The position numbers and the translations under genes are program-made. A stretch of 64,000 bases of DNA from positions 58,900,001 through 58,964,000 of the forward strand of contig CM060731.1 in the NCBI GenBank assembly GCA_030704615.1, in the 5' to 3' direction. Under the pieces are notes generated by a model. The model was not told where the DNA came from, did not search any database, and saw nothing but the letters and a program-made list of their open reading frames with translations. The stretch comes from Takakia lepidozioides (lineage: Eukaryota > Plantae > Bryophyta). The number at the start of each line of letters is the position of its first letter. Position 1 is the stretch's first letter. Below are positions 6,500 to 60,100 of the stretch, one piece after another.

Positions 6500-7200
6500 C
6501 TGGTACTCGTGTTTGATCATTTCTACTCATTGGTCAAAGCGGCATAAGAAATTTGTTTCTCACCAAACCCGAAACTGTCTCTTGTCCGTAGGTGCTGCTT
6601 TCAATTGGGTGGTCGATGAAAGACATGTCATGAACATTGAGCAGCCATTTAAGACACCTGAGGTAAGTGCAGGCTAAGGCCATGGTTCCTATGTGTGGAT
6701 GTGCTTGATCTGTCACTCGAAACTATTTTTTCTTATTTGGTCTGTTCTCGGTGTCTACTGTGCTACTGGACAGTAAGACTTGAAATGGGACGGTGGGGTT
6801 GTTCCTCTGGAGATCTCTAGGGAGTTCATCCGGATGGAGCCATTAATTACTTGCGGTAGCTGGTCAAACACCTTTTCACACACAGTGATGACACCAACTG
6901 GCCCACACACAACTCCTGACATCTTTCCTTACGAAACTCGTGACATGCTTCTTTTAAGAGTTCGAACAGGGTGCTGACAATCTGAAAATTAATTTTGAAC
7001 TTCCGACAGAAACTTACTGCAAACCCTAATAATAAGGCAATAAGAATGATCTGAGTTCCTGCACATTTGTAGGAGAAACCCAATCCAACTTCATCGTTTG
7101 GATTTTCCCAGGGGCCATAGAAATCCTCTTATCACACTTACAAAATTTGGCAAAGTTTAGTATGCAATAACACCCTCAAGACTTCTCTAAGATGTTATAC
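6500..7200 (-). pseudogene. Highly decayed Ty3/Gypsy pol remnant
   Basis: Minus-strand fragments WVSPTNVQELRSFL and GFAVSFCRKFKINF..TLFELLKE resemble the RT thumb motif P.nvkElrsFLGl..fYRkFi.nfs...pL.eLlk. Confidence 0.4.
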
Positions 7201-15049: not shown

Positions 15050-18000
15050 GACGCTCTCACCTCCCGCAGCTCTCCAGCTCCTCACCTCACTCCCAATCCC
15101 CTCCAATTACGCACGCATCTACACAAGCTCAGTCAAAGAGCTGCTCTCTGCCTAGCTATGGCGAAGAGCGCCGCGCTTCTTCCAAGGACGGCTGGCAAGG
15201 CGGGAACCTGTTCGCAGCTGCAAGACCTAATCTCTGACCCGCCGCGCTAACCCCGGTTAACCCGGTCAATCAGTCGCGCCCTTTGTTCGCCAATCCCCGA
15301 TCGCTCCTTACCACCCCCGCCACCGCCACTTTTAGCCCAACCGCCACTTTTCAAACTGGCAGGGCCTGGGTTCGATCCCCTTCACGGACCGATCAGCCGC
15401 CTATTTAGCTGCGCCCATAACCTGGATGGGGCTGCGAGCAACCTCATTTGAATTCAAGCTGCTGCTAAATTTGGCGCGCCTGCTAAATTGGGGCTGGCCT
15501 GCCCATTAAAGGCCAAACAGCAGACCAGACTGCTAACCGCGGTTAATTTCACACGTGCCTTTTAACCCCACACGACAGCGGGGCAACTGCTGTCATTGGC
15601 CCGTCGGTTTCTCGTCAGACGGCACGCGGGTCGCTTTCAATCTCTACCGTCGGTGGGTAGGAAATGGACGGTGCCGATCGGACTGCCATCTGTGGGTCTG
15701 CTGTTATTGCCGTGCCTCAAAGAGACGTTGATGGGCTCCCTGACAGCCTATCGCCATTTTTGCGATTTTTGAATTTCATGTCTCGCCAAAATGGCGATCG
15801 GAGCTGCTTGCAGAAAAGTTTGGTTGGCTGGTCGGGTGGCCAATTATCATCCATCCCAACGAACTGCATCCAGGAGGGAGCAGGCTCACTGTGGCCCCGG
15901 ACGGTCCAACAGGTCTGTCAACAGCAGGCCCACAATGTCCCTGACTCCTGACTCCTGACCGCTCTCCTCCCCCCTCTGCCTCCACATCTGCACTGCATAT
16001 TCCTGAGTTATTTTCCATTAGTTTTCTGTGGAGGGTCCAAGTTGACGTGTCAGATATCTGACTGCTTTTCTGCAGCTGGAAGCTTAGCCATGAACTGAAA
16101 TGGATGATTTGTTTTTTGGATGATTCCATCCCATTCATCAGCAAAAAAGGAGGTGCAAATATAAGTTCGAAGACATTCTCTAATGCATGGGTAGGATCCT
16201 GTGCAGATGGTTCAGCTTGCATCAAGTGGGGGCTAAAATAAATGGCTATAAAGGAGGGCACAGTTATAGCTTGTATCATGTTTCCAAGTGACACCGCCCT
16301 CTATAACTGATGTCCCGCAATTGAGCCCAACATTCCCAATATAGAGACACAATAAATATGGCATTGCTACACATCAGAGATCGGATGATTTCATTCGTTG
16401 CGTTATCGCCCAGTTTTGGTCCGAGTTTGTCGTGGATGTAAACTCCAAAAAGCTGGATGGTTTAAGCTAACCGTGATTAAGCTCGCAGCGTTAATGGCAG
16501 CCCGAACGGGACAAGGGGGGCAGTAAAGCCGAGGGGCAGCACGACTGAGGACGGGCCCTGCTCGCCGCCCGCGCCGCTGCCCCTGACCCCGCTGCCCTCC
16601 GGGCCACCCGCCTTTACTGCACATTCATCTCTTCCATCTATTTTTTCCATTCCCTATTAAATCTGCCCCATCTTCTTGCAATTATTAATAAACTACTGTG
16701 CGAGAACCCCCCTTTTTTGTTATTTGGTCGATGGTTTTTCATTGCATCCACGAGGAAAAATCAGTTTGCATGAATTCCTGCCCTCCTGAGTCGACAACCA
16801 CTGTGCGGGATTGAATAATAATAATCTGGGAAAAACTCACGGGCTGGAACTCTACCTGTCAAGGAAGCAAATTCCGGGCGAGAACATTCACCCCGTGCTT
16901 TTGAAGTAGCAGAAAGTTAGACATGAATGACGGCGGGTTGAGTAATTTTGAGACCTCCTAAAATCAGACTCGCCCAAAAATCTAGGAACCTCGGGCTGTA
17001 GCACATCGCTTTGCCATACATTTTGTTTCGAATCTCGAATGCGAGAGTATCCCAGTGTCAGAACACACGGAAGGCATACTTTATCTCGAGTCCCCCGATC
17101 TTTCGTCTGATTGAGAAAAGAACCGAACTGGAGACTAAAGTAGCAAATTTCAGATTCGGATGGGAATTGCATGGGAGGTTCGAATGGGAAGGATGGTTGG
17201 TGCCCTCTCCACTCATTGTCAATGCATAGGCTACTGCAAATCATTCTGCCATAAAAACCCAGTAAAGTCGTAGAAGGAGAGAATTTTTGAGTGTCAGAGC
17301 GACAAGTGCAATGATCCACCGAATCTGGGCATGTTGATGACTCGTCTGGCGCTCTGCACCCACCTCCCTCGCAGCACATGGCCACCCACTCGCTGTAAGT
17401 CCAAATCTTTTTTTATGATTTCCACACTCGATCCACTAATCTCCCAAAAATCTCCACAACCCTAATAATGGCGTTAGTCAACCGGGCACGTTACGGGGGT
17501 GACTTAGTGCGGGATTAGTCAAACCGGACGCATTATTAGGGGTGGTGATTAGTGCCTTGAACCAGCGCTGCACTATCACTCCTGTACTCATCACCCACCT
17601 GCCACTGTCTTTTCCCAGATCTGAACGGATGTCCTGCCCCAATAATATTCAGTGTCATTCATCCACTTTCGTTGTCGTCCGTATGGGGGTTTATTATTAA
17701 AAACTTTCCTGCTATTAATACAAAACTGGCATTCAGTAATTCATTAAATTCACTGGGATTAGGTGTTCCGAAAAATCAAAGAATAAAAACTATTCCCATG
17801 CATTTGGAGCCGAAAATGGAGGGAAATTAAATATCGTCCCACCGCCTGAGATATTCCCAAGTGTAAATAGGCGGGGCATTGAACTCCCGGGGTAATAAGT
17901 GGCCCCTCCATAAAAGAGCGCAGTGGCCAAGGATCACGTTGGCCCCGCATTTACCACCGCATGCCCTTCAATGTTTCATGGCTTTTACTGCCCCTCATTA

Positions 18001-28120: not shown

Positions 28121-28125
28121 AACTT

Positions 28126-29115
28126 TGTTAGAGGACTATTTGGGACTTAGACACTTTTACGGGATCTGTGGGGTACCCTTACTTTTGCACAGAATGAGAC
28201 CAACAGGAGCCTTAGGGGTGACAGCAGCGCACTTTAGAAGGGGGTTACACAGCTCGTCACAGTCCGACACAGCCCGTCACAGCCAACACAGCTCGTCACA
28301 GTCCGACACAGCCCATCACAGTCTGACACAGCCAGACACAGCCAGACACAGCCGTCACAGCCAGTCACAGCTCGACACAGTCGACACAGCCCAACACAGT
28401 CGCACAGCCAGTCACAGCTTGACACAGCTGTCACGACCATAGGGAACGGATAGCAGGACAGGGAACGAATGTGGGGAACAACATCTGCGAATGTAACATG
28501 TTAGTACACGGATGACGGTTAGTGAGGGAAACGGTTAGAACAACGGGTAGGAAGATAAAGCCATGAGCGAGGACAGGAGGGAATCACTTCTGGGGGAATC
28601 ACTGCTGGAAGGAGTGGGGGAGCACTTCTTGGGGGGACTTCGGACATCACTGGGGGAAATGAGGCAGAGAGCGCATCTCTGAGCAGAAAGAGGGAAAGCA
28701 CGGAGTAGGAGGAGGACGATCTGTTGATGCTTAATGAATGCAAACAGTAGAATTGTAATGTAGAGCAGATTGGAGACTCCATGGCTTCAGCCTGATACTT
28801 GATAGATATTAATCTAATACATACTTCATACTCACACTGTGTAGAGAGATCTGAGTGAAGCTGTGGAATGAATGGATGAGTTGATGGAATCCGATAGATT
28901 GCTGAAGCAAACTGATACTTAAATACCAACAGTAAGGTAACTAGCTAACATGAATGCGGGAAGGAAAACAAATAGGAAACACCCCCATGATACACTAGCT
29001 GTAGGTCATGACTGATTGTTCTGAGCGGGCTGAGTGCTTAGAGATTTCCAACTCTTCTATCTTGGAGTTTCCGCCTCGGATAGCGAAGGGATGGGTGAGT
29101 AAAAGCCGCGCGACA
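28126..29115 (+). repeat. 5' LTR (990 bp)
   Basis: Direct repeat of 40245-41213 with TG...CA termini; contains about 19 CACAG units at 28247-28432. Confidence 0.97.
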
Positions 29116-29703
29116 TTTGGCGACCATACTAGGGATCTGGGTCATGAACAACCAGATGTGACAGGCATCTGGTGGGATCATGGTGGTTGGAGAATTAAAG
29201 AATTTGATGTGAATCAAATTCCTTATGAAACTGAGAAGGAAAGATTGTCCAAACGATTCTTCCAGAGGTTTTTGGAATTGCCAGACGGTTGTAAAGAAAA
29301 CATTCTTAAGAGAGTGCATGATGCTGACCCTGAGTGGGGTCTGGAGAAAGGAGTGATAAAGATTTATCAGGTGGCCTGTAGAGGAAGAGCACGTTGGTTA
29401 CCAACATTGGTTTATGTGATAGCATTGCTATCCATTAAGCGAGTAGAGTTTGAAGGCTGGGAGGAAAGAAAGGTGAATGTTTATACTCATATGCATGAAG
29501 AGCTTGTACTGGTAAAGAATTGGATTCCAAAGGATATTTTGTGGATCAAAATCACACCAAGAACAGCTTTCCAGACTTGTTTGCCATATGGTTATATGGT
29601 AACGGAGACTTCAAGTATAGCCAAGGGTGCATTGAAGCTTGAAAGAAACCCAGGCATATACGAGAGATATTACAGAAGAGAGTTTTGGTTATTGCCACAT
29701 TAA
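29008..29703 (+). CDS. Extra 5' ORF (ORF1, 231 aa) upstream of gag; unknown function
   Basis: Open frame beginning at an ATG inside the LTR and crossing the PBS; its C-terminal ~143 aa and the TAA stop are nearly identical in copy 2 (57945-58376). Confidence 0.7.
   Translation: MTDCSERAECLEISNSSILEFPPRIAKGWVSKSRATFGDHTRDLGHEQPDVTGIWWDHGGWRIKEFDVNQIPYETEKERLSKRFFQRFLELPDGCKENILKRVHDADPEWGLEKGVIKIYQVACRGRARWLPTLVYVIALLSIKRVEFEGWEERKVNVYTHMHEELVLVKNWIPKDILWIKITPRTAFQTCLPYGYMVTETSSIAKGALKLERNPGIYERYYRREFWLLPH
29118..29135 (+). promoter_or_regulatory. Primer-binding site TGGCGACCATACTAGGGA (tRNA-Arg-like)
   Basis: Starts with TGG 2 nt after the LTR; its complement ends ...TGGTCGCCA, as in the 3' end of a plant tRNA-Arg. 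The tRNA identity is inferred and the match is imperfect further in. Confidence 0.75.
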
Positions 29704-29709
29704 AAAGAA

Positions 29710-31680
29710 ATGAAAGACATGGGACAAAGAGAAGCTAGACGCCAGAGATATTCAGCAAAAAGAGAAAGCTATCTGAAAGCTAATTATCCATATCTTTGGG
29801 AGAGAGGAATAGACATAGGGGAATCATCTGGACCTCTCACACCATTAAGATCAGAGAGTACATCACCCATACCGGAAAAACTAGAGTTGGATGCCACTCC
29901 TTCTGTTTCTTTGCAAGAAAGATTAAGGGAATTGGTACGGGAAGAAGATCAATCACGAGGTGAAAGATCTGAGGTACATCCCTGGATAAAAGATTTGACA
30001 GAAATCTTTGATAAGAGTTGGCATGGAACACCAAAAGCAGGAACTCCAGTTTCTGAAGCGGAAGGTGAAGAAGGAGGAGAGGATGTGGCAGAGCCAACGG
30101 AGAGTTCAGACTCTCCAACACCATTGCAGTTGAGTTACATGAGTGAAGAAGAAACCCAAGGGCAGAACTTGGAGGATGAAAACAGAGAGAAGAAATTGGA
30201 AGAGGAAGAGTATGAAGAAGTAGACCCAACAGCTGAGGTTGAGACTACAACCAGGACATCCCAACCCGTTGGACCTGGATCAAGTGGAGCACTTGGATCA
30301 TAGGCCAACGAAGGTGTCGGCTCAGGGGGATCAGGCAGGCTGCCTGGATCTGGCTCTGGGGGGACAGGGAGTGTGGGAAGTAGTGCAACTGAAGCTGGGA
30401 ATACTGTGAATATCGTGGGGCCAGTAGCAGGGAGTGCTCAAGGGCCACCACTTGGTGAAAGATCCACCACAACAACAACAGGTCCTGAAGGACCAGCACC
30501 AACAAGGGTGCCAGCACCTGTCAGTGGGCAGAAGGTAGGGCCACAGATGGCGTTACAACCAACATGGGCAAAACCACCTTTTCCAATATATTCAGGAAAA
30601 GGGGATCCCGATGTACACATTAGCCAATTTGAGCACATGTGTATAGTGAACAATGAGAATGGCGATGATGTCAAGATGAGATTGTTTATTTGTTCACTTA
30701 TCAAAAAAGCAAGTGAATGGTATGCAAGATTCCCTGATAATCATTTCCTAACCTGGAATGGCTTGAATACAGCATTCTGAAATAGGTTCAGGACAAGTAA
30801 AACTGAGGATGAAGTGTATGGAAGTTTACAACAGTTAAAGCAAAAGAAGCATGAAACTGTTGAGGAGTATATGGAAAAGATGGAATTGATGATGAAAAAG
30901 TTGGCTGCAGTACCAGCACCAGGTTTACAGAAGACTTGGTTTGTGAGTGGACTAAGACCAGAGTTGCAAAAGAAAGTGGATATGTTACCCCATAATACAG
31001 TGGAGGAGGCATTTGAAACTGCAAACATAATTGAGCAATTGGGAATGCTCAGGAGAGAGAAAAGGGATGATGAGGACTCTGAGGATGAGTCAGATGAAGA
31101 AGAAGAGCAAGAACTAAAAAGGAAGAGTAAGAGAAAAGAGAAGTTGAAGAGGGATAACTATGAGAAAAGATTGGAAGAAATCTTGAAGAAGTATGTCACA
31201 GAGGCTGCAACACATTGGAGGAAGGGTGTATGGTGTGCAAAGTGCCAGAATGAAGCCATACCACCACAGAATGCCACATGAAGGAGAAACACTGTACTAT
31301 CTGTAAAATGGATAACCATTCTACTGAGAATTGTTACTACAACAGAAGGACAGTTGCAAGAGAACCTAGGCAAGTAAGGGTGCATCAGGTGCAGCCCCAG
31401 CCAAGAAGAAACAATGATCAGGACCACTATGGTAGGTCTGGTGGTTATAACAATGGCATGGAAGGGAGAGGTAATTCAAGAGGGAATTACCAAGGAAATT
31501 CCAGAGGCAACTATCAGGGTAATCCAAGGGGAATTACCACCCGGGAATCAGGATTACAAAATAATCCAAGAGCAGACCAAGGGCGAGGACCCAATGGTGA
31601 AGAACTATGTTACTATTGTAATCAGCCAGGACATCGCAAAGCAGCCTGTTCATTCTGGATAGACACCAGAATGAGATGAG
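29710..31680 (+). pseudogene. gag: Gag with long acidic/Gly-Ser N-terminal extension and three CCHC zinc knuckles (disrupted)
   Basis: Retrotrans_gag-like FPIYSGKGDPDVHISQFE..KMRLF.CSL..KASEWY..TWNGL; knuckles CAKCQNEGHTTTEC (intact in copy 2), CTICKMDNHSTENC and CYYCNQPGHRKAAC. Stops TAG 30301 and TGA 30778 are CAG and CGA in copy 2. Confidence 0.9.
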
Positions 31681-34600
31681 AGCTCCTGTGAATGAGGGCC
31701 CAGTGGTGGCAGCTCACATGGTTAGGCCATGTGTTGTACCAGAAGTAAGTACAATGATAGTAACAAGAAGCAAAGCCAAACTAATACCTCCAGTAGTTGA
31801 GGAAGATGATGATAATGAAGGTGGCAGTGATATGCCTGAAGATGATGAGGCTTGGAGAGATGAGAAGGAACTGCACAAGGAAGTGGCAGATACCATAAGG
31901 GAAATGCAGAAGAGTACTGATATTCCTGTGGCAGATTCCTCTGATTCTGATGGAGAAGAAGAAGTGAGTGAGGATGAAAGGAAGAAAGAAGATGCAGACA
32001 TGCAAAGTAATGAAGGGACTTTGGCTGAAGTAATATGCCAGACCAAAGCAGAGATTACCATTGGACAGCTATTGGCTGTGGCACCTTATTGTAGACACAG
32101 GTTGTATCAAGCAATCAATCGAATTGCCCAGGAGACAGGAAACACAGACCTGAACAGCAAGGTGACCAGTTATAATGTGAAGCCGGAAGGGCGAGAAACA
32201 GTCATGGACTTTGATGATTCTATGCCAGTAATCCAATTGAGAATTGGAAGCACAGAACTAACTGATGTACTGATAGATGGAGGCTCTGGAGTAAATATCA
32301 TGACAGACCAATTAAGAAAGAAGCTTGGTCTAAGTAACATGAAACCAGCCCCATTTACAGTAACAATGGCAGATCAAAGAAGTGTACAGCCATTGGGATT
32401 AATAAGAGGAGTTAAGATACAGATACAGAAGATGATCTTTATGATCACAGTATGGATGAAGTCATGGAGGCTTACTCCTTATTATTGGGACGTCCGTGGC
32501 TGAAACAGGCCAGGGTATTCCATGACTGGAATTATCAGTTTCTAACCGTGTTGTTTAAGGGGTATCTGATGTGGCGTAGTGTCAGCAACACCAATTGAAG
32601 AGGAAACCAACAGTTACCCATCACATTTCTATGAAGAAAAAGAAGGAGAAATGGAAATCCTAGAGGAACCAGCCACTGTGAGTTTACAGGATGAAGTGGT
32701 GACTGGTTGGACAATCACAGCTGATGAGCAAGTGAGGGAAGTGAATGTGGGAACTAAAGAGGAACCGAGGATGGTGAAGGTAGGAGCTGATTTGGAGCCA
32801 GAATTCTTTGAAGAAGCTAAGAGTTTGTTCATCAAATACAGAGATGTATTTGCTTGGAGCTATGAGGATCTAAAAGGGATACCACCTGAAATCTGTCAGC
32901 ATAAGATTGAACTGGAACCAGGGTCAGTACCAATCAAGCAGGCAAGGTACAGAATGAATCCCAACTACGCACAGAAGGTTGGAGAAGAGATCAAGAAGTT
33001 GGCTGAGGCTAAGTTTATATACCCAATAGAGTATACAACTTGGTTGTCACCCATTGTGATAGTTCCCAAGAAGAATGGTAAACTAAGAGTTTGTGTGAAC
33101 TACAAGAAGCTGAATGCTTGTACGAAGAAAGATCCTTTCCCTTTGCCATTCACAGAAGCAGTATTGGACACTGTGGCAGGCCATGAGATGTACTCATTCA
33201 TGGATGGCTTCAGTGGTTATAATCAAGTGCAAGTGGCAGAAGAAGACCAAGGAAAGACAGCTTTCATCACAGACTGGGGTGCTTATGCATACAAAGTCAT
33301 GCCCTTTGGACTTTGTAATGCACCAGCAACCTTTCAGAGAGTGATAAGTGAATCTTTTCATGAGTATCTGGATGATTTCATGCAGGTGTTCTTGGATGAT
33401 TTCAGTGTGTACAGCTCTAAGAATGAGCACTTGCATAAATTGGAGTTATGTCTGGCCAGATGCAGGATGAGAGGTCTGGGCCTGAATCCAGAGAAGTGTA
33501 CTTTCTGTGTGAACTCAGGGGTGCTTCTGGGACACATTGTGTGTAAGAGGGGACTTCTTGTGGATCCCAGGAAAGCAGAGGCCATTAAAGCCTCTCCACC
33601 ACCAGTGAATGTTAAGAGTCTAAGGAGATTCCTTGGACAAACCAGCTATTACAGAAGATTTGTCAGACGGTATGCACAGATAGCAGCACCATTGAGCAAA
33701 CTTCTGAAGAAAGATGCAGTGTTTGCATGGACACCTGAATGTCAACAGGCTTTTGAGGAACTTACATTGTCAGTAACAACTACACCTGTGCTGATTAATC
33801 CTCACTGGCAGGAAATATTTCATGTTCACTGTGATGCTTCTGGAGAAGCACTAGGAGCAGTGTTAGCCCAAAATGTTACAGGAAGGATAGATTCACCTGT
33901 GTACTATGCTAGCCGATTGATGAACAATGCCGAAAGAAATTATAGCACAACGGAAAGAGAAGCATTGGCAATGATCTATGCAGTGAAGAAATTCAGGCAT
34001 TACCTGTTGGGCAAGAAGTTTATGTTCTATGTGGATCACCAGGCTCTGATATACCTGGTAAACAAACCTCTGATAAGCGGAAGAATAGCAAGATGGTTGA
34101 TAATCTTGCACGAGTTTGAGTTCGAGGTTGTTTACAAGCCTGGGAGGCTGCATCTTGTGGCGGATCACTTGTCACGGTTATCAACAGGAGAACCAGCCAC
34201 GGGAGTAGATGATCAATTACCAGATGCGAGTCTATTTGCAGTGGAGGTGCAGGGAAGTGCAGATGACTGGTTAGATTGGCAGTGGCCAATCAGATACTAC
34301 CTTGCTCATGGTCAGTGCCCACCAAGTTATGGTAAGGAGCAGAGGAAGAGAATCGCTATCAAGGCTTTACCTTATACTATGGTAGGAAGCAGAATGTATA
34401 AGCTAGGACCTGATGGAGTACTAAAACGATGCTTGTACCACCATGAAGTAAATAAAGTTTTGGAGGAAGTTCATAAAGGAGTGGCTGGAGGTCATTTTGG
34501 AGAAGAGACTACCAGTAGGAAGATACTACTGCAGGTTACTGGTGGCCTACTTTGTTCAAAGATGTACACAAGTATTGTCAGAGTTGTGATGAATGTCAGA

Positions 34601-35490
34601 GGCTAGGACCTTTGCAGAGATCTGGAAGATGGCCTTTGCATCCTACAATGCCTACGGAACCATTTCAGAAATGGGGACTAGACTTTGTTGGACCAATTAA
34701 CCCACCAGCCAAGAATACACGGAACAGGTACATAATTACAGCCACAGCTAAAGCTTTGAGGGACAACACAGCCAAGTCCACAAGCAAGGTTCCTGTATGA
34801 GAACATACTTACACGATTTGGCTGTCCCTTGGAATTTATCAGTGATCAGGGAAGTCACTTCATTAATGAGACCATTGAATTATTGACTAAAGAGTTCATG
34901 ATTGTGCATAGGAAGAGTACAACATATTACCCACAGGGTAATGGGCAGGCAGAGGCTACCAACAAAATACTATGTACTATCTTGGCTAAGATAGTCAATG
35001 CAAACAGAACGGATTGGGATACAAAGCTGCTGACAGCTTTGTGGTCATACAGACTTCATATAAAGTCACCACTAAGTATACACCATTCCAATTAGTTTAT
35101 GGTATGGAAGCTTTACTTCCAGTGGAATTCCTGTTACCTACCATGAGAACGGAATGGGGAAAGAGAATGGAATTGCAAGATTCCATTAAGGTCAGGAAAC
35201 ATGAATTATACCATGTGGAAGAAGTACGTGCTGATGCAGCTGATAATATGACCAGAATTCAGATGAAGAGAAAGGAACAGTTTGATGAAGGCAAGTTAAA
35301 GACTTTTAAGACGGAGATTTGGTTCTATGGTTGCAGAAGAAAGGAAAGATTAAAGCTTCTAAGCTTAAATCACCATGGAAAGGACCTTATGTCATACAAA
35401 AGATGTATGATAACAACACCGCCATGTTACAAACCATTAACAAAGAGATGCTGGGAAGAGTCAATGCCAATAAGTTGAAGGGGTACAGTG
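31676..35490 (+). pseudogene. pol: Pol: aspartic protease, reverse transcriptase, RNase H, integrase (frameshifted)
   Basis: VLIDGGSGVNIM (PR); MDGFSGYNQ, MPFGLCNAPATFQR, VFLDDF (RT); HCDASGEALGAVL, YSTTEREALA, DHQAL (RH); H-H-C-C zinc finger, [29 protein letters not shown] (IN). Confidence 0.95.
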
Positions 35491-35615
35491 GTATCCATGA
35501 CAAACCATTGCAGCATGATTTGCATGTTGAAACGCAAAAGCAGTCACGGGCTGCGCCAGTGATACCAACGGAGTATGGAGCACTTGTCGCTAAGCCGAGC
35601 ATATATGACCAGGGC

Positions 35616-35945
35616 GACACAGCCTATCATAGCCCAGCGAGGCGCGACACAGCCTATCACAGCCCATCACGACGTGACACAGCCTATCACAGCCCAGCAA
35701 TGCGCGACACAGCCTATCACAGCCCAGCACGGCGCGACACAGCCTATCACAGCCCATCACGACGTGACACAGCCTATCACAGCCCAGCGAGGCACGACAC
35801 AACATATCACAGCCCAGCACGGAGCAATACAGCCTATCACAACCTACCACAGCGTGTCACAGCCTATCACAGCTTACCACAGTGCAACACAGCCTATCAC
35901 GGCGTACCACAGTATGACACAGCCTGTCACAGCTCAACACAGCCT
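35616..35945 (+). repeat. Eleven 30-bp tandem repeats encoding (DTAYHSPxRR)n in the integrase frame
   Basis: Unit gacacagcctatcacagcccagcgaggcgc with exact 30-bp spacing, decaying toward the 3' end. Confidence 0.92.
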
Positions 35946-36656
35946 ACTAGGGTTACACAATCCATAGAATCAGTGACAGGTGGACGCAGGATAACTTCAG
36001 GGAAATGGCCGGCGGAAGAAAGGACGGAAGCCAGTTTAGAAAGGGACACGTGGAAGTCAGGGCGCAACACACAGCTGAGAAGGAAGTGCAAGAACAGATG
36101 TCATCAAGAAAGAGGACAAGAATGGCCGTCAAAATACCTAATTAGCACGTCAATTCGGATGAATGGCGGGCCCATTAATGAATACGGAAAAAGGGCAACA
36201 GAACAAACGGCAAGTACAGAAAAGCGAAATTCTTGTCACATGTGTTATCCTAGTGGACAGTCCAGCAGGGAAAGTCCACTAAAGAAAATTAAATCTAAAA
36301 TCCAGTCACAGCGGTTACAGCCAATCGAAAGCCAGAGAAGGGATCAAGAAATTGGAGGGAATTTAAGCGCAAGAGTCGGCGTCGTTCTAAGTAACGGGCG
36401 TCTCGACGGGACAAACCATCAATGCTATAGCTTTGAAGCTATGGAGGAACTAACAGACTATACGCTCGCAATATTACTTACGCAGTGGCATAGGGACGAA
36501 AGAACAGAGCGGATCTTTTCTCTTGATCGATGCTTGCAAGCCCCGCAGGCTTACAAGAAATTACCCATAGCTTTTTGTGGCAACCATACGTTTATGCTTT
36601 GTGCCCTGCAGGCATTTCTTCAATTGTTACAGCCAAAACATTTCTGTGGGTCTAGA

Positions 36657-39600
36657 ATGAAGAGAGTGAGAGGAATGGAAGAAATCAGGGTGAAGAGCAC
36701 CACAATCCTGCAGAAACAAACGATTGCTACTCCACAGGCGGTACAGTTACTGAAGGAGCTGCGATTGCAAGGATTGCAAAGCAAAGATTGGACATTGCAC
36801 CATAGACAGTACATGTTACAATTCTTGCAGAACTTTGAGCCTAGGACAGGAGCAACAACGGTGAAGGGAGTTGAATTAGAAATTACTCCCCTATACCTAC
36901 AACAATTGTTTCAATTGCCAGCAGGTCAGGTGCATGTGGAGGAGCACAGGGCAAGACTGCAAATAGGGGACTTATTCCAAGAAGGGAGTTTCTTTAAAAC
37001 TCAGGGTTATGCTTGTACCAAGGCCGTGTACCCAGGGCTAAAGGAGGTAGGCCAGGTATTGAACGTTCTGTTTGCCATGAAACAGAACCAACAGTATTTG
37101 AGCAGATCCTTCACAGAGGAAATACTCAAAGCCCTGAGAGGAGAAGAGGTAGAATTTATAAATGTACAACGCACTGGTAGAGGAGATGAAAAGATTACAG
37201 GGTACTGCCGCAAAGTCTCCTATCATAGTGTCTGGCCCAATCATTGCTCAAATAATTCTTGATTCTGGCATACTTGATGCTCGAGAAAGAAAGGAGATGA
37301 GAGTGTTTGAGCCAGAAACCACTGCAATGGAAGAGCAAGGCTCTTCACACAGTGAGGGTGGACTGGCAGGGCAACCCCAAACTAAGAGACAGAGGCGGGG
37401 AAAGACTGTAGTGGCGGATCCACTGGCTTCACGGAATCCGCATGATAATGTTTCCCAAGCTCTTGTGCAGGAAGGGGCACAGCAGCACAGAGAACTGCTA
37501 TTACTGAAGCAGGACCTTCAGAGAGGGAAGAGGAAGTTACTTCAGTATCACAGCCATCACAGCCAGATGATCGGCTTGTCACAGAGTTACCACAAGTTGT
37601 CCATGCAGTTCCACCAGAAATAATTGATTTGGAAAAAGAAGGGTTAGATATTCCCACTACAGAACAGGTGGTGGCAGAAATTGAGAAGGGGGACCTTCTC
37701 TATGAATATTCTGGTATGGTCAAGGACACAGTGATTCCGGAGGTGCAACGGTTGTCCAGGGGAAACCCTGCGGTGCATATAATACACACACCTGTGACGG
37801 AGGTACCACAGGTAGAATGTCAAGACACTGCAGCACCGGTGACGGATGAAGTGGTTCAGGAAGAAAATCTGGTGGGGCAATGGCCTGAGTGGTTCGTAAG
37901 GCATCACACTGTTGAGGATCAGGGAGAACAGCAGCAAGCTCACCAAGATGACCCTCAACAGGCCATGCTTATGAGTTCCATAAGCAGGACACTTAATTTG
38001 TTGGGTACTTATGTCAAATCCCATGTTCCCACTACTCAATTGGCAGCTTTGAGGGAGGAACTCAGGAAGGAGTTTGAGGCTCGACTTGCCACAGAGTGTG
38101 CAAACAAGGTCGATGAAGAGGTCACTCTCAAGATGCAGCAAGACTTGGAGAGTACAGAAGCGGCTTTGCAATTGGCCAAGGAACAATTGATTGAGGCAGG
38201 CCTCGCGCAAGACCACTTGCACGAAGCACATAAGCAACAGCTATACCAAATGCAGGTGAAGCATGAAAGCAAGTTGCAAGAAGTGAATGCACTACATACG
38301 GAGTTGCAGACAGTGCATGACAGGATGGCCATACAATGTGCTACACTCACAACTATGCTTGACCAATCTACAAAAGAAATAAACAGTCAAGCGGAAAGAT
38401 GTACGAAGGCAGAGGCAGAGAATGTTGAGCAAGTGAAACTCATTGTCGATATGAAGAATACAATCTGTCGCAATGAGGATACTTTCAAGCAATACAGGCA
38501 GGTTGAAGCTGACCAAGAGAGGCACATCCTGGAGTTGCAACAAACGGTCATGGCCAATAGAAATGAAATCTCTGTCACTAACAAGGCTTGGAAGGAAGCC
38601 AATAATCTGCTTGCTGCCTATGCGAATTGGTTGAACCTCATGCGAAGCGCATGGAGGCTTTACAACAGCAGTTAGATATGTACAAACTCAGAGAGGAGCA
38701 GACTCTCAGAGGTACCACAAGCAACTTGGTGGATAACCACCTTATGCAGGTCTGGTTAGCACAAGGGCCAGTGGAGGGCAAAGCACCACGAAAGCTCACC
38801 CAAAGCGAGATGAATGAGCTCAGACTGCAAGTGCAGAACATTGCCACAACTACTATAGACAATGTCTATAGTAGGATAGCGGAGTTACAGGAGGATGTAG
38901 ACGGCCTGCAGACTCAAGTGGAGGACCTCACTTCAAATATCGACAAGAGAGTCTGTGTACCTGAGGAACAGCTAATGGCTTCTTATTTAAAAGCGAAACT
39001 TTGGCTTTTCAGTCTTCTTCACAGGAGGTGCAGGAGATGCCAATGGTACAAGAGCCAGTGCCACCAACACCACAACAAGTCACTGTGCCAGTAGCTGACC
39101 CTGTTGTTACTACAGCCACACCACAGCCACCACAGCCTGAGGTATGGGGGAATGCTGCTTTTAACCCACCTAAAACTCCAGCTGCAAGGGAGTACAGTAG
39201 GGCTATGATTATGCCCTTCAACCAAATTCCCATTGTGTTGGATTTGGCTTGGAAAGAATTTAGTCCTCCGCAGTCATTGGCACATTACTATCAAATCATG
39301 CGCATTTGGCTGCCAGTGGCAACTAGAACTAAGGTTCTTCCAAACAATCGACCCATTGAGGATCATCACTTTGCGCAGTACTGGCATGAGGCAAGTACCA
39401 TGTTGAAGGAATTAATTGCCTTCCAAGTTGTACATGGATTCATTTATACCAAGACCAAGGAGGTAGCAAGTATTGTCATGGGCTGCGGGTTATACTACGC
39501 TGCTTGTTTTCTGGTACGTTATCACATTGAGCAGCACAAGATGCAATCGCGCTTTCTGAGTTATTCCAGTGGGGATCATTGGGTCTTACCTTCAGTGCCA

Positions 39601-40206
39601 CCTCATATGTACCTATATGAGGCAAAAGTTATGATGCAAAAGGATTCTCAAATTCGTTCATGGTTTCATGCGGCCTGGAACAATTTGTCAACACAGAAAT
39701 TCGGCCCTGACGATATTTTCTTTAAGGGACATGAGGCATGGAAATACTTGCACAATTCACAAGTCATTGGTACCCCACTCACCTGGACAGACAAGGAGCT
39801 CAGGGTCTTCACCAATTTTGCCATTCAGCGTTTACAGCAAGTTTTAAAGTTTAAACTTCCAGACATGGTAGGACAACATTGTATGCCCCAGAGGATTCCA
39901 CAAAAAGTTCGGCAGTTAAAACACCTGAGAGGCGATGAGGATTCTGATACAACTGTTTCTTCAGCGGACTCTTTTGACATGGGAGAAGACTATGCAATTC
40001 AGATGGCAGAGAAGAAGCGACGGGGGTCTCCTATGCCTGAAAGATTACCTCGATATCAGCCTCCAGAGGGCCTTACATATCCAGGTAGTGTTCAATCATC
40101 TCCGTCAACCAGTGACAGACCTCGGGCTCGTACACAGAGTCCTTCACGAGACTCTCAACGTCAGAAAGGTGCTCGCTCACAAAGGTTTGCTAATCCCAAT
40201 CAGTAA
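36657..40206 (+). CDS. 3' accessory ORF (~1,150 aa, broken by ~4 frameshifts): Athila-ORF2/Transposase_32-like domain, coiled coil, and unknown C-terminal domain
   Basis: Overlapping + ORFs (tail of 35319-37262, 37162-37623, 37629-38675, 38627-39094, 39001-40206). Pattern QFLQNF..TVKGVELEIT..LQQLFQLP.G...ALRGEEV...GPIIAQI resembles plant-retroelement extra-ORF domains. Heptad-rich E/Q/K/L region at ~38040-38950. Stop lies 21 nt before the PPT. Confidence 0.7.
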
Positions 40207-40227
40207 ACCGTGAGGACACGGCTTTTT

Positions 40228-40241
40228 GAGAGGGGAAGGGG
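40228..40241 (+). promoter_or_regulatory. Polypurine tract GAGAGGGGAAGGGG
   Basis: Purine run 3 nt upstream of the 3' LTR TG. Confidence 0.9.
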
Positions 40242-40244
40242 TAA

Positions 40245-41213
40245 TGTTAGAGGACTGTCTGGGACTTAGACACTTTTACGGGATCTGTGGGGTACCCTTA
40301 ATTTTGCACAGACTGAGACCAACAGGAGCCTTAGGGGTGACAGCAGCGCACTTTAGAAGGGGGTTACACAGCCCGTCACAGCCAACACAGCTCGTCACAG
40401 TCCGACACAGCCCGTCACAGCCAACACAGCCCGTCACAGTCCGACACAGCCCGTCACAGCCCACACAGCCAGACACAGTCGACACAGCCCAACACAGTCG
40501 CACAGCCAGTCACAGCTTGACACAGCTGTCACGACCATAGGGAACGGATAGCAGGACAGGGAACGACTGTGGGGAACAACATCTGCGAATGGAACATGTT
40601 AGTACACGGATGACGGTTAGTGAGGGAAACGGTTAGAACAACGGGTAGGAAGATAAAGCCATGAGCGAGGATAGGAGGGGAATCACTTCTGGGGGAATCA
40701 CTGCTGGAAGGAGTGGGGGAGCACTTCTTGGGGGACTTCGGACATCACTGGGGGAAATGAGGCAGAGAGCGCATCTCTGAGCAGAAAGAGGGAGAGCACG
40801 GAGTAGGAGGAGGACGATTTGTTGATGCTTAATGAATGCAAACAGTAGAATTGTAATGTAGAGCAGATTAGAGACTCCATGGCTTCAGCCTGATACTTGA
40901 TAGATATTAATCTGATACATACTTCATACTCACACTGTGTTGTGAGATCTGAGTGAAGCTGTGGAATGAATGGATGAGTTGATGGAATCCGATAGATTGC
41001 TGAAGCAAACTGATACTTAAATACCAACAGTAAGGTAACTAGCTAACATGAATGCGGGAAGGAAAACAAATAGGAAACACCCCCATGATACACTAGCTGT
41101 AGGTCATGACTGATTGTTCTGAGCGGGCTGAGTGCTTAGAGATTTCCAACTCTTCTATCTTGGAGTTTCCGCCTCGGATAGCGAAGGGATGGGTGAGTAA
41201 AAGCCGCGCGACA
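40245..41213 (+). repeat. 3' LTR (969 bp)
   Basis: Matches the 5' LTR; about 17 CACAG units; followed by TSD AACTT. Confidence 0.97.
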
Positions 41214-41218
41214 AACTT

Positions 41219-44619: not shown

Positions 44620-46320
44620 AATTAGCGACCGTAATTAAGCGACCGCTAATACTACGGTCCGTATTTTTTTTTTTATGAAAAACAAGCGACCGCCACTACT
44701 GCGGTCGCTTTTATTTCCTTTCATTTTGTGCAATATTGCAGTCACTTCTATTTTGTATATTTTTAAATTTAAGCGACCGCCAAGATAGCGGTCGCTATTT
44801 CTTTTTTTAATTCGAAAAATAGAGCGACCGCCAGTGCGACCGCCAATCTTGCTTTAAAAAAAACACATTTGAAGCGACCGCCAATATGGAGGTCGCTATT
44901 TCTTTTTCTATTTCGAAAAATAAAGTGACCGCCAGTGCGACCGCCAGTGCAACCGCCAATCTTGCTTTAAGAAAAATAAAAATTGAAGCGACCGCCAATA
45001 CGGCGGTCGCTATTTCTTTTTAATTCGAAAAGCAAAGCGACCGCCATAATTGGCGGTCGCGTTCATTTTGAATTTTCAAAAATGTATTTGCCACCGTGCG
45101 ATCGTCAATACGGCAGTCGCTTGTTTTCTTTTTTAAATTAGGCGACCACCAATACGACTGCCAATCTTGTTTTTTTTAAACAATAAATTGAAGCGACCGC
45201 CAGCATAGCGGTCGCTATTTATTTTTTAAATTCGAAAAAATAAGGCGATCGCCAATGCGACCGCCAATCGTGCTTTAAATAAAAACACATTTGAAGCGAC
45301 TGCCAATATGGCGGCGCTTCTTCCTATTTCGAAAAATAAGGCGACCGCCAATCTTGCTTTAAGAAATAAAAAAATTGAAGCAAACGCCAATACGGCGGTC
45401 GCTATTTATTTTTTAATTTTGAAAAAACAAAGCGACCACCATAATTGGCGGTCGCGTTCATTTTGTAATTTTCAAAAATGTATTTGCCACCGTTGCGACC
45501 GCCAATACGGCAGTTGCTTGTTTCTTTTTTAAATTAGGCGACCGCCAATACGACCGCAATCTTTTTTTTTAAACAATAAATTGATTTGAAAAAAATAAAA
45601 AATTTGAAGCGAACGCTAGCATAGCGGTCGCTATTTATTTTTTAAATTCAAAACATAAGGCGACCCCAGTGCGACCGCCAATCTTGCTTTCAAAAAAAAA
45701 ACATTTGAAACGACCGCCAATATGGCAGTCGCTATTTCTTTTTCTATTTCGAAAAATAAGGTGACCGCCTTGCTTTAAAATATATAAATTTGAAGCGACC
45801 GCCAATACGGCGGTCGCTATTTATTTTTTAATTTTGAAAAACAAAGCGACCGCATAATTGGCGGTCGCGTGCATTTTGTTAATTTTCAAAAATGTATTTT
45901 ACCACCGTTGCGACTGCCATACGGGCGTCGCTTGTTTTTTTTTTTTTAAATTAGGCGACCGCCAATACGACCGCCAATCTTGTTTTTTTTTAAAACAATA
46001 AATTGAAGCGACTGCCAGCATAGCGGTCGCTATTTGTTTTTTTAATTCGAAAAATAAGGCGGCAGCCAGTGCGACCGCCAATCTTGCTTTTAAAAAAAAA
46101 ACATTTGAAGCGACCGCCAATATGGCGGTCGCTATTTCTTTTTCTATTTCAAAAAATAAGGCGACCGCCAGTGCGACCGCCAATCTTGCTTTAAAAATAA
46201 AATAAAATTTGAAGCGACCGCCAATACGGCGGTCGCTATTTCTTTTTTAATTTCAAAAAACAAAGCGAATTGGCGGTCGTGTTCATTTTGTTAATTTTCA
46301 AAATGTATTTGCCACCGCCA
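44620..46320. repeat. Array of palindromic GCGACCGCC-N-GGCGGTCGC motifs in A/T tracts, with a ~410-bp higher-order period
   Basis: Dozens of gcgaccgcc/ggcggtcgc motifs; landmark tttcaaaaatgtattt(g)ccaccg recurs at ~45075, 45470, 45885 and 46297. Confidence 0.9.
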
Positions 46321-57177: not shown

Positions 57178-60100
57178 TGTTGCAGTGTAGCAATTTATAC
57201 GGGATCTGTAGGGTACCCTTAATTTTTGCACAGACTGAGACCAACAGGAGCCTTAGGGGTGACAGCAGCGCACTGTAGAGGGGGTTTACAGTCAACACAG
57301 CCCGTCACAACAGCCCACACAGCCACACAAGCCCGTCACAGTCGTCACAGCCCACACACCCAACACAGCCAACACAGTCGCACAGCCAGTCACAGCCCGT
57401 CACAGTTTCACACAGCCAGTCACAGCTTGACACAGCTGTCACGATCATAGGAACGAAGAGTAGGACAGGGAACGACTGTGGGGAACAACACCTGCGAAGG
57501 GAACATGTTAGTTCAGACGACGGTTAGTGAGGGAAACGGTTAGAACCGCGGATAGGAAGATAAAGGGAAAACGGGGAATTGAGGGGATCATTATTCGGAG
57601 GAGGACTTCTTAGTCAGGGAGGCGGATCAGAGGAAAAAGATGGAGAGCACTGAAGGAGGAAAGAGGATTAGTAGATGCTTGTTATATGCAAAGCGGTAGT
57701 GATATTGTAGAGCAGATTAGAGACATAATGGCTTCGGCCTGATACCTGATAAATCATAATCTGATACTTACACGATACAATCACACTGTGTAGAGAGATC
57801 TGAGTGAAGCTGTGGATTGAATGGATGAGTGAAAAAAGATTGAATTGATAAGCAAACTAATACGTTGGACCATTAAGAATGAAGTGAATCAATTCCCTGT
57901 GGAACGAAGGAAGAAAGATTGTCCAAACATTCTTTCAAAGGTTCTTGGAATTGCCAGACGGTTGTAAAGAAAATATTCTTAAACGAGTGCATGATGCTGA
58001 TCCAGAATGGGGTCTGGAGAAAGGAGTGATAAAGATTTATCAGGTAGCCTGTAGAGGAAGAGCACGTTGGTTACCAACATTGGTTTATGTGATAGCATTG
58101 CTATCCATTAAACGAGTAGAGTTTGAAGGCTGGGAAGAAAGAAAGGTGAATGTTTATACTCATATGCATGAAGAGCTTGTACTGGTAAAGAATTGGATTC
58201 CAAAGGATATTTTGTGGATCAAACTCACACCAAGAACAGCTTTTCAGACTTGTTTGCCATATGGTTATATGGTAACGGAGACTTCAAGTATAGCCAAGGG
58301 TGCATTGAAGCTTGAAAGAAACCCAGGCATATACGAGAGATATTACAGAAGAGAGTTTTGGTTATTGCCACATTAAAAGAAATGAAAGACATGGGACATG
58401 AGTGATGAAAGAGAAGCTAGACGACAGAGATATTCATCAAAAAGAGAAAGCTATCTGAAAGCTAATTATCCATATCTTTGGGAGAGAGGAATAGACATAG
58501 GGGAATCATCTGGACCTCTCACACCATCAAGATCAAAAGTGCATCACCTATACCGGAAGAACTAGAGTTGGATGCCACTCCTTCTGTTTCTTTGCAAGAA
58601 AGATTAAGGGAATTGGTACAGGAAGAAGATCAATCACGAGGTGAAAGATCTGAGGTACATCCTTGGATAAAAGACTTGACAGAAATCTTTGATAAGAGTT
58701 GGCATGGAACACCAAAAGCAGGAACTCCAGTTTCTGAAGCAGAAGATGAAGAAGGAGAAGAGGATGTGGCAGAGCCAACGGAGAGTTCAGACTCTCCAAC
58801 ACCATTACAGTTGAGTTACATGAGTGAAGAAGAAACCCAAGGGCAGAACTTGGAGGATGAAAACAGAGAGAAGAAATTAGAAGAGGAAGAATATGAAGAA
58901 GTAGACCCAACAGCTGAGGTTGAGACTACAACCAGGACATCCCAACCCGTTGGACCTGGATCAAGTGGAGCACTTGGATCACAGGCCAACGAAGGTGTCG
59001 GCTCAGGGGGATCAGGCGGGCTGCCTGGATCTGGCTCTGGGGGGACAGGGAGTGTGGGAAGTAGTGCAACTGAAGCTGGGAATACTGTGAATATCGTGGG
59101 GCCAGAAGCAAGGAGTGCTCAAGGCCACCACTTGGTGGAAGATCCACCACAAAAACAACAGGTCCAGAAGGACCAGCACCTGTCAGTGGGCAGAAGGTAG
59201 GGCCACAGATGGCGTTACAACCAACACGGGCAAAACCACCCTTTCCAATATATTCAGGAAAAGGGGATCCCGATGTACACATTAGCCAATTTGAGCACAT
59301 GTGTATAGTGAACAATGAGAATGGCGATGATGCCAAGATGAGACTGTTTCCTTGTTCACTTATCAAGAAAGCAAGTGAATGGTATGCAAGATTCCCTGAT
59401 AATCATTTCCTAACCTGGAATGGCTTGAATACAGCATTTCGAAATAGGTTCAGGACAAGTAAAACTGAGGATGAAGTGTATGGAAGTTTACAACAGCTGA
59501 AGCAGAAGAAGCATGAAACTGTTGAAGAGTATATGGAGAAGATGGAATTGATGATGAAAAAGCTGGCTGCAGTACCAGCGCCCGGTTTACAGAAGACTTG
59601 GTTTGTGAGTGGACTAAGACCAGAGTTGCAAAAGAAAGTGGATATGTTACCCCATAATACAGTGGAGGAGGCATTTGAAACTGCGAACAGAATTGAGCAA
59701 TTGGGAATGCTCAGGAGAGAGAAAAAAGAAGATGAGGACTCTGAGGATGAGTCAGATGAAGAAGAAGAGCAAGAACTAAAAAGAAAGAGTAAGAGAAAGG
59801 AGAAGTTGAAGAGGGATAACTATGAAAAAAAATTGGAAGAAATCTTGAAGAAGTATGCCACAGAGGCTGCAACACATTGGAGGAAGGGTGTATGGTGTGC
59901 AAAGTGCCAGAATGAAGGCCATACCACCACAGAATGCCACATGAAGGAGAAACACTGTACTATCTGTAAATGGATAACCATTCTACTGAGAATTTGTTAC
60001 TACAACAGAAGGACAGCTGCAAGAGAACCTAGGCAAGTAAGGGTGCATCAGGTGCAGCCCCAGCCAAGAAGAACAATGATCAGGACCACTATGGTAGGTC

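Follow-up and report, generated by a model that had tools for sequence, protein, structure and literature searches.

A complete Ty3/gypsy element in Takakia lepidozioides

The window, a 64,000-nucleotide stretch of Takakia lepidozioides DNA (contig CM060731.1, positions 58,900,001 to 58,964,000), contains a complete LTR retrotransposon of 13.1 kb (28126-41213), flanked by a 5-bp target duplication, AACTT, at 28121-28125 and 41214-41218. Its two LTRs differ by 22 mismatches and seven gap blocks over 966 aligned nucleotides. Pfam searches returned Retrotrans_gag, zf-CCHC, RVT_1, RT_RNaseH and Integrase_H2C2, that is, the order gag - RT - RNase H - integrase, and no protease family was matched. 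With the LTRs, the duplication, a primer-binding-site-like stretch, a polypurine tract and this domain order all present, the element is a Ty3/gypsy LTR retrotransposon, with the following features:

28126-29115, plus strand: 5' LTR (TG...CA), matching the 3' LTR at 40245-41213
28247-28428, plus strand: 10-nt CACAGCC-type array inside the 5' LTR (TRF)
29118-29129, plus strand: primer-binding-site-like TGG... stretch, 2 nt 3' of the LTR (direct sequence reading)
29190-30778, plus strand, frame 1: sense coding extension 5' of the capsid domain, four consecutive open segments in one frame
30814-31679, plus strand: Gag capsid and zinc knuckle (Pfam Retrotrans_gag and zf-CCHC, both weak)
32579-34606, plus strand: reverse transcriptase, RNase H and start of the integrase zinc domain (Pfam RVT_1, RT_RNaseH, RT_RNaseH_2)
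34516-35312, plus strand: integrase core, broken (frames 1, 2, 1; Integrase_H2C2 and tblastn to the integrases of relatives)
35313-35487, plus strand, frame 0: integrase C-terminal GPY module (translation)
40228-40241, plus strand: polypurine tract, 3 nt upstream of the 3' LTR (direct reading)
40245-41213, plus strand: 3' LTR, pairing with the 5' LTR and adjoined by the target duplication

A sense frame of about 3,570-3,670 codons spans nearly the whole internal region. The initial annotation had proposed a single frame of ~3,500 codons, and this length holds, but the window copy itself is broken at about eight places. Its 5' extension (29190-30778), for which no Pfam family was matched, contains three in-frame stops, and its integrase core changes frame near 34600, 34780, 35051 and 35312. 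Since this core is broken into four frames 5' of 35313, an unbroken integrase frame is to be found only in other copies. A second copy in the window (copy 2) exits it at the equivalent of 35122, before the junction between integrase and the downstream extension.

The integrase frame stays open into a long 3' extension

The GPY module, which shares 43-47% identity with those of the relatives L001, L002 and L005, is read in an ORF of 647 aa (35319-37262). From the end of the module (~35487) to the stop at 37260 we counted 591 codons without a stop, in agreement with the roughly 590 noted initially. What is left on the 3' side lies in four overlapping open pieces, with no in-frame stop along the path:

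37159-37621: open piece, frame 1
37446-38673: open piece, frame 0
38603-39092: open piece, frame 2
38962-40204: open piece, frame 1

The path ends in a stop codon at 40204-40206, 38 nt upstream of the 3' LTR, and the integrase frame is thereby extended by about 1,570 codons past integrase, into a family-specific accessory protein that we designate X. Its parts are as follows:

35613-35948, plus strand: in-frame array of 11 tandem 30-nt units encoding DTAYHSPxRR-type decapeptides (TRF)
35949-36440, plus strand: basic, Ser/Thr-rich, poorly hydrophobic spacer, open in frame 0 alone (composition)
36441-37310, plus strand: domain A (about 290 aa), under the strongest constraint
37311-37950, plus strand: acidic, proline-rich spacer (composition), in which the window copy shifts frame at 37505
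37951-38996, plus strand: putative long coiled coil of ~350 residues, E/Q/K/L-rich and nearly without Pro/Gly (composition)
38997-39150, plus strand: Pro/Gln/Thr-rich spacer (composition), with copies varying by a 3-nt indel at 39013
39151-39900, plus strand: domain D, about 250 aa, hydrophobic-rich, predicted helical (composition, hydropathy)
39901-40206, plus strand: charged stretch, then Ser/Pro/Arg-rich basic tail and the stop codon

The array has 10.9 units, in keeping with the 11 in-frame repeats initially reported, and each 30-nt unit consists of three 10-nt CACAGCC-type sub-units. TRF assigned it periods of 30 and 90 and an indel rate of 0%; where the same motif forms arrays in the LTRs, the periods are 10/19-20/29/39 and indels amount to 2-10%. 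An open frame arising by chance, or as an artefact of low complexity or assembly, would be extremely improbable. Two forward frames are open through the array, so that its openness is no evidence, and ORFs over tandem repeats were excluded on the same ground by Neumann et al. (PMC6317226), but in the unique sequence that flanks the array on either side, the frame of X is the only open one. Over the unique stretch 35949-36560 there are no stops in frame 0 and 11 in each of the other two forward frames; from base composition, the chance of these 204 open codons is 7e-6, which upholds the initial judgement that a stop-free unique linker is improbable, and the chance of an open frame over 35481-37259 as a whole is 2e-14. 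On this value, and with the same sequence present in independent runs of other studies, we rejected a chance open frame.

Domains A and D and the coiled coil show a coding-like distribution of GC over codon positions. The basic spacer 35949-36440, which is probably disordered, carries no such signal. This missing codon-position signature was counted against a fusion, and the in-frame ATG at 36441, with which domain A opens in good context (G at -3 and +4), would suit separate expression. Domain A has a hydrophobic fraction of 0.32-0.44 and is shifted in frame at 37155-37161 in the window copy. The region 37951-38996, a probable long coiled coil by composition, gave weak Pfam matches to coiled-coil families only, and the window copy shifts frame there at 38624-38626 and 38996. 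Domain D contains one borderline hydrophobic segment (39460-39516, a 19-mer with a Kyte-Doolittle value of 1.69). AlphaFold2 single-sequence models gave an all-helical domain D at pLDDT 40 and a domain A at pLDDT 34; because of its low pLDDT, the domain D model was left out of the reading. An antisense ORF at 37644-38237 matched no family.

Other copies keep one frame, and the frame is under selection

The family is extremely abundant and its copies are 85-99% alike. We compared copies in contigs of the runs X1, X5 and X6, from three studies, and of the sparse run X8; X1 is the same-sample run, X6 is a small skim run, and X8, guessed to be RNA, provided 12 short contigs. In many copies, length differences that are not multiples of three were present at 35051, 35312, 37155-37161, 37505, 38624-38626 and 38996. 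These six places coincide exactly with the frame changes of the window copy from 35051 on. With the length that other copies have there, a single frame runs through to 40206. At five of the six places, the longer form made up 94-100% of depth in X6 and 35-98% in X5; most contigs do not align through the place at 37155-37161, where support comes from their loose ends.

The window copy has the shorter form at all six testable breaks, and X1 shares it at 45-78% of depth, a pattern that would fit long-read errors and thus the artefact explanation. If the breaks were assembly errors, however, the reading of a continuous frame would become stronger, not weaker.

The variation among copies rests on 40 of the 652 variant places and 12 of the 21 indels, a scope within which a minority of copies could carry stops. 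Elsewhere than at the frame-change places, two indels were listed, both of 3 nt. Among the 36 best-supported listed variants, 21 were synonymous in the piecewise frame versus 26% expected (p = 5e-5), and none created a stop codon. By part, 7 of 8 listed variants were synonymous in domain A, and the coiled-coil region had 8 synonymous and 8 mostly conservative changes. In the spacer 35949-36440, 3 of the 4 listed variants were replacements and one was synonymous. For calibration, differences between copies 1 and 2 were 76% synonymous in RT-RNase H and 54-58% synonymous in gag plus the 5' extension; within the 5' extension (29190-30778), 29 of 54 differences were synonymous, as against 17-19% in control frames.

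From the frame-keeping lengths in other copies and the excess of synonymous variants, we conclude that the bulk of the family has one reading frame through integrase, array, spacer and X, as initially predicted, and that this merged frame is under purifying selection about as strong as that on the family's gag.

These data also bear on an account in which the fusion is a neutral accident that goes back to a single master copy, whose integrase stop had disappeared not long before a burst, and in which neither X nor the read-through has a function today. The abundance and close similarity of the copies would suit it, as would the heterogeneity and doubtful function of plant sense 3' ORFs (PMC6317226). 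We nevertheless hold it to be improbable: the synonymous excess among copies speaks for selection on the frame during diversification, a once-non-coding spacer would not stay stop-free for 160-200 codons, and the listed polymorphic indels are triplets.

X has no detectable relatives

The nearest matches to the Pol of this element were unnamed metagenome proteins and proteins of liverworts, a fern and conifers (40-59% identity), which does not establish the element as Athila-type. We used six Pol relatives, of at most 59% identity, for comparison. In the three that are readable at this point (L001, L003 and L005) a stop follows 64-123 codons past the GPY module. Four of the six carry 3' ORFs of 327-692 aa, which are unrelated to X and also to one another; tblastn, BLASTP and hhalign comparisons of X pieces with the six loci and their 3' ORFs revealed no relation.

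Pfam searches with all pieces of X, at E 0.01 and E 10, yielded coiled-coil noise only, and Transposase_32 (PF20167), ATHILA ORF-1 (PF03078) and PMD (PF10536) matched no piece at E up to 10. The Atlas feature search placed domain A at 0.80 to ATHILA ORF-1 and at 0.79 to Transposase_32, below the line of 0.9 and no higher than the scores that shuffled proteins attain in a third of cases; the Transposase_32 pointer came from one cluster, 14% of whose members carry the family. The Transposase_32/Athila-like domain proposed in the initial annotation found no backing in Pfam, these sub-threshold scores being the sole pointers. The Atlas search gave no usable match for the C-terminal piece of X, the PDB sequence search none for domains A and D, and a word-based homologue search with residues 215-647 of the 647-aa ORF and with the C-terminal 413 aa was blank. 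An exhaustive representative search with the 647-aa ORF, array included, gave 368 matches. The 150 listed among them fell either on the GPY module or, through low complexity, on the decapeptide array, as in immunoglobulin or prolyl-hydroxylase proteins whose repeats are unrelated. When the spacer and domain A were compared with these 150 by local BLAST, nothing was found, and a scan of metagenome loci with domain A confirmed no locus. At the level of sequence, X is therefore an orphan, with no detectable relative in Pfam, PDB sequences, the word-based and exhaustive searches or the metagenome loci.

Several known element types were considered, and a chromodomain and an extra RNase H were rejected. 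No chromodomain family was found in the post-integrase pieces at Pfam E up to 10, as would mark a chromovirus. The additional archaeal-type RNase H (aRH) of the Tat clade (Ogre/Retand/TatI-III) was not found, the only RNase H detected being the RT-linked one; there is no room for an extra RNase H between RNase H and integrase, and Pfam matched no RNase H family in X. Unlike a retroviral-type env, X is not a separate ORF, and it has a single borderline hydrophobic 19-mer, at 39460; being fused to integrase, X has no N-terminal signal peptide. As for Athila features, Pfam was negative for ATHILA ORF-1, the Atlas score lay below its line, and the 3' ORF is not separate.

X as a possible Gag-Pol-X tail

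The integrase-X layout is unusual, but precedents exist. According to Neumann et al. 2019 (PMC6317226), certain extra ORFs stand alone in one element and lie within the polyprotein in another, and PMD, Transposase_28 or ATHILA ORF-1 mark some of the sense 3' ORFs of plant elements (PMC6317226). X resembles the plant Athila/Tat/Ogre eORF-3'F ('env-like') in its position between integrase and polypurine tract, sense orientation and large size, in being orphan, fast-evolving and coiled-coil-bearing, and in the tandem array between pol and ORF; it differs in having no stop or non-coding spacer after integrase, no signal peptide, no clear membrane segments and no Pfam match to PMD, Transposase_28 or ATHILA ORF-1. 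Gypsy-borne PMD-A (PMC5418596) and Transposase_32/ATHILA ORF-1 are, like X, accessory domains of plant gypsy elements; domain A lies near the Atlas clusters of the latter, within the shuffled-protein range, and hmmscan gave no match at E = 10. The chromoviral integrase-chromodomain fusion likewise places an extra module at the integrase C-terminus in the Pol frame, but the chromodomain, whose function as a reader is known, has about 50 aa, whereas X has ~1,570 aa, several domains and no chromodomain match. Moss Tat elements, which also have bryophyte Ty3/gypsy coding sequence past integrase, carry a 'post-integrase' extra RNase H that the literature variously treats as part of pol or as a separate ORF (PMC13468544); in X no RNase H-like domain was detected.

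We consider it reasonably probable, from the sequence features above, that X is a 3' accessory ORF merged into Pol and forms the tail of a Gag-Pol-X polyprotein in a non-chromoviral Ty3/gypsy family. X would be the counterpart, in this family, of the accessory ORF that Athila/Tat-like elements of plants carry in sense at their 3' end, the in-frame tandem array having probably replaced the stop and spacer between pol and that ORF. With the accessory ORF joined to Pol, X would be made from genomic RNA as the Gag-Pol-X tail, in fixed proportion to integrase and with no need for splicing. The extension runs as short spacer, 11 decapeptides, basic spacer, domain A, acidic spacer, coiled coil, domain D and basic tail; its spacers would provide flexible tethering or sites open to protease, and the protein would multimerise through the coiled coil.

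Alternatively, X could be a separate protein, translated from a subgenomic RNA that arises by splicing or from an internal start near 36441, with the continuity of the frame tolerated and unused. Cer1 of Caenorhabditis elegans provides a precedent, as its CERV ORF is in the polyprotein frame yet expressed from a spliced mRNA (PMC10309623), and among plant elements, Bagy2 is one for which an env-like message is reported to be spliced (PMC7264820); the in-frame ATG of domain A and the weak constraint on the spacer point the same way. X shares with CERV a 3' ORF in the polyprotein frame, but CERV has 517 aa and a five-exon spliced mRNA (PMC10309623), whereas X is about three times longer and was read from DNA alone, and no sequence similarity between the two was found. 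An untranslated spacer should moreover hold stops, as the other two frames do within these 204 codons, the array holds a strict 30-nt period, and no sign of splicing came from the sole RNA-like run, X8, of guessed type and with few short contigs. On balance we regard separate expression as rather unlikely.

As the tail of a Gag-Pol-X polyprotein, X might act in a particle or nuclear step, in chromatin tethering or in counter-silencing. A decidedly long shot is that X is an integrase-tethered chromatin module that enters the nucleus with the pre-integration complex and either steers insertion or shields new copies against silencing; what it recognises might be the CACAGCC arrays, which occur in both LTRs and, translated, in the element's own ORF. 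If true, the retrotransposon would carry a means of self-recognition within its polyprotein.

Extra ORFs occur commonly in plant LTR retrotransposons; they are orphans of unexplained function, and those merged with the polyprotein have been left aside in surveys. The very abundant family described here has such a merged frame, with evidence that selection acts on it, and offers a concrete system in which to address accessory-protein function in integration versus silencing. It also bears on how tandem arrays at the pol/3'-ORF boundary can create gene fusions, and annotation pipelines that expect a stop soon after the GPY module mis-split such elements.

Structure of the element and its open frame after the integrase

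The element carrying the extended integrase frame (copy 1) is a complete 13.1-kb Ty3/gypsy element, and the extension lies in its 3' third. Comparing the window with itself delimited its LTRs as direct repeats with TG...CA ends:

28126-29115, + strand, 5' LTR
40245-41213, + strand, 3' LTR

The LTR pair shows 22 mismatches over 966 aligned positions and 7 gap blocks, and it is bordered on either side by the five letters AACTT. A primer-binding-like TGG... stretch begins 2 letters past the 5' LTR, a polypurine tract ends 3 letters upstream of the 3' LTR, and Pfam recovered gag capsid plus zinc knuckle, RVT_1, RNase H and the integrase zinc domain in Ty3/gypsy order. Upstream of the capsid domain lie ~530 sense codons (29190-30778) that contain three in-frame stops in copy 1 and matched no family in a Pfam search. 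Since 54% of the differences from the second copy in the window (copy 2) are synonymous here, versus 17-19% in control frames, this region is genuinely coding, whether it extends gag at the N-terminus or forms a 5' ORF. Copy 2 starts near 57188 and exits the window at a point corresponding to 35122, too early to bear on the junction between integrase and extension. Its LTR (57188-57830, compared with 28148-28881) is 80-84% identical to the copy 1 LTRs and the internal regions are 93-95% identical, reflecting either much faster LTR divergence or subfamilies with different LTRs. Tandem blocks unrelated to the element were also observed at 44764-46317 and 1407-1980, with spacings of ~420 nt and ~190 nt and 80-88% identity.

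The initial annotation had described an integrase frame running for about 590 codons past the GPY module (the C-terminal end of the integrase, 35313-35487) without a stop, and we confirmed this as an ORF at 35319-37262 with 591 open codons beyond the module. The 11 DTAYHSPxRR repeats reported in this frame correspond to an internal array at 35613-35948 (35614-35940 according to Tandem Repeats Finder) of 10.9 units of 30 nt without indels, which translates to decapeptides of this type. Since a second forward frame is open across the array as well, its openness is no evidence. Within 35949-36560, by contrast, there are no stops in frame 0 but 11 and 11 in the other two forward frames. Based on composition, the probability of 204 codons staying open by chance is 7e-6, and that for the whole of 35481-37259 is 2e-14, in agreement with the earlier argument that so much stop-free unique sequence in the integrase frame is improbable; an open frame due to chance or artefact is practically excluded. 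Downstream, the coding path continues through four further open pieces that overlap one another (frames 1, 0, 2 and 1), free of in-frame stops, to a stop at 40204-40206, 38 nt upstream of the LTR. The integrase core 5' of 35313 is likewise split across several frames in copy 1.

Judged by composition, the GPY module is followed by a 44-codon spacer, 11 decapeptides, a basic Ser/Thr-rich spacer, domain A, an acidic Pro-rich spacer, a coiled coil, a Pro/Gln-rich spacer, domain D and a tail. The probable coiled coil is a stretch of ~350 residues almost devoid of Pro and Gly and high in E, Q, K and L; domain D is high in hydrophobic residues and predicted to be helical, and the C-terminal tail is basic and Ser/Pro/Arg-rich. 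A 197-aa antisense ORF (37644-38237, minus strand) faces the coiled-coil region; it matched no family in a Pfam search and is probably a by-product of codon composition.

The frame is continuous in many other copies

The stretch is present in runs from five studies, labelled either with a single organism or as 'plant metagenome', in which the family is extremely abundant, and contigs from four runs were aligned to 35000-40244. Many copies show non-triplet length differences at 35051, 35312, 37155-37161, 37505, 38624-38626 and 38996, and these six places coincide exactly with the frame changes of copy 1. When the lengths of the other copies are applied, frame arithmetic joins the upstream to the downstream frame at every place; for 37155-37161, which only a few contigs span in alignment, this is judged from loose contig ends. 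At the five other places, the depth carrying the continuous form is 94-100% in a small skim run (X6), 35-98% in a metagenome run (X5) and 22-55% in the run that is probably the assembly's own sample (X1). Among the listed indels, only two fall away from the breaks of copy 1 (37589 and 39013), each of 3 nt.

The short form at the breaks makes up 45-78% of the depth in X1 and is almost never seen in X6, pointing either to a large subfamily that is frameshifted or to errors that long-read assembly makes systematically in a methylated repeat. Because copy 1 carries the shorter form at all six tested breaks and has no stop-gain along its 1,630-codon path, some of its breaks may be such assembly errors rather than decay, in which case the continuous-frame reading only gains strength. 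In the fourth run, guessed to be RNA (X8), a 467-nt contig from another copy (36798-37229) spans the break at 37155-37161, a faint hint that the family is transcribed.

Selection on the extension

Variants were taken from the best-supported 40 of 652 places, and the 36 single-letter differences between copies that had the best support were scored in the piecewise frame. Twenty-one of the 36 are synonymous, against 26% expected from the observed substitution spectrum (binomial p = 5e-5), and 24 fall on third codon positions. None creates a stop; a stop carried by most copies would be expected among the best-supported 40 of 652 places, and a minority with one could remain. For calibration, the synonymous share between copies 1 and 2 is 76% in RT-RNase H, 54-58% in gag plus the 5' extension and 11-19% in wrong frames. 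As the share in the extension compares with the 54-58% of gag, the variants indicate gag-like selection. A read-through inherited neutrally is at odds with this synonymous excess, and we regard it as unlikely.

Constraint is uneven along the extension. Synonymous changes make up 7 of 8 variants in domain A (36441-37310), the coiled coil has 8 synonymous variants and 8 replacements that are mostly conservative, and the spacer at 35949-36440 has 1 synonymous variant and 3 replacements and gives no signal in GC by codon position. This spacer looks like a tether, selected merely to stay open.

Similarity searches and possible expression of the extension

The pieces of the extension were searched separately, in the form in which copy 1 carries them. 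Pfam yielded no family up to E = 10, a PDB sequence search no match, a scan of metagenome loci nothing, and two word-based searches were blank; all matches listed by an exhaustive search were low-complexity matches to the array or fell on the GPY module. Single-sequence AlphaFold models were too poor for use. The sole pointer came from an Atlas feature search, which for domain A listed clusters of ATHILA ORF-1 (0.80) and Transposase_32 (0.79), below the line of 0.9 and in a range that shuffled proteins often reach, so the Transposase_32/Athila-ORF2-like label given initially is a lead, not a finding.

Most likely, the extension (X) is translated from genomic RNA as the C-terminal portion of a Gag-Pol-X polyprotein and maintained by selection. 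Such a polyprotein would comprise ~3,570-3,670 codons, its sense frame beginning shortly past the primer-binding site. The main rival, to which we give a distinctly smaller but appreciable chance, is that the extension is made from a spliced mRNA despite sharing the polyprotein frame. Cer1 provides the precedent (the Cer1/CERV model), as its 3' ORF likewise lies in the polyprotein frame and is expressed via a spliced mRNA (PMC10309623), and an in-frame ATG in good context at 36441 would be compatible with it; the stop-free spacer, however, argues that ribosomes read through it. As for function, a role of the extension in integrase targeting or anti-silencing is speculation.

Pol relatives and a proposed origin of the fusion

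A search with the RT-RNase H piece matched Pol proteins from the liverworts Riccia and Marchantia, the fern Adiantum, conifers and numerous metagenome contigs. Identities there did not exceed 58%; for one locus (L005), tblastn gave 59% across part of RT. Among six fetched loci, the three with a readable integrase end (L001, L003 and L005) have the integrase stop 64-123 codons past the GPY module, and four of the six carry a downstream sense ORF of 327-692 aa. By tblastn, BLASTP and hhalign, these four 3' ORFs are unrelated to the extension and to each other, and a Pfam search assigned them no family. This fits the 314 unrelated groups of Ty3/gypsy extra ORFs described by Neumann et al. 2019 (PMC6317226).

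The internal array lies where these relatives have their integrase stop, and because it occupies this site, an in-frame array probably bridged pol and a once-separate accessory ORF. Its 30-nt unit is built from three 10-nt sub-units of CACAGCC type, a motif that recurs as arrays in both LTRs of copy 1 (28247-28428 and 40366-40526) and in the LTR of copy 2 (57188-57565). Within the window, 41 of 50 forward occurrences of this motif type fall in these four arrays, and the reverse strand has only 4. Whereas the internal array repeats with periods of 30 and 90 nt and is free of indels, those in the LTRs show periods of 10, 19-20, 29 and 39 nt and contain 2-10% indels.

In L001 (1-16275), two copies of a related element are oriented head to head and form a near-perfect inverted pair. 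L006 carries one 692-aa 3' ORF twice (4489-6567 and 14295-16373) at a distance of 9.8 kb, as would be the case for tandem elements with a common LTR.
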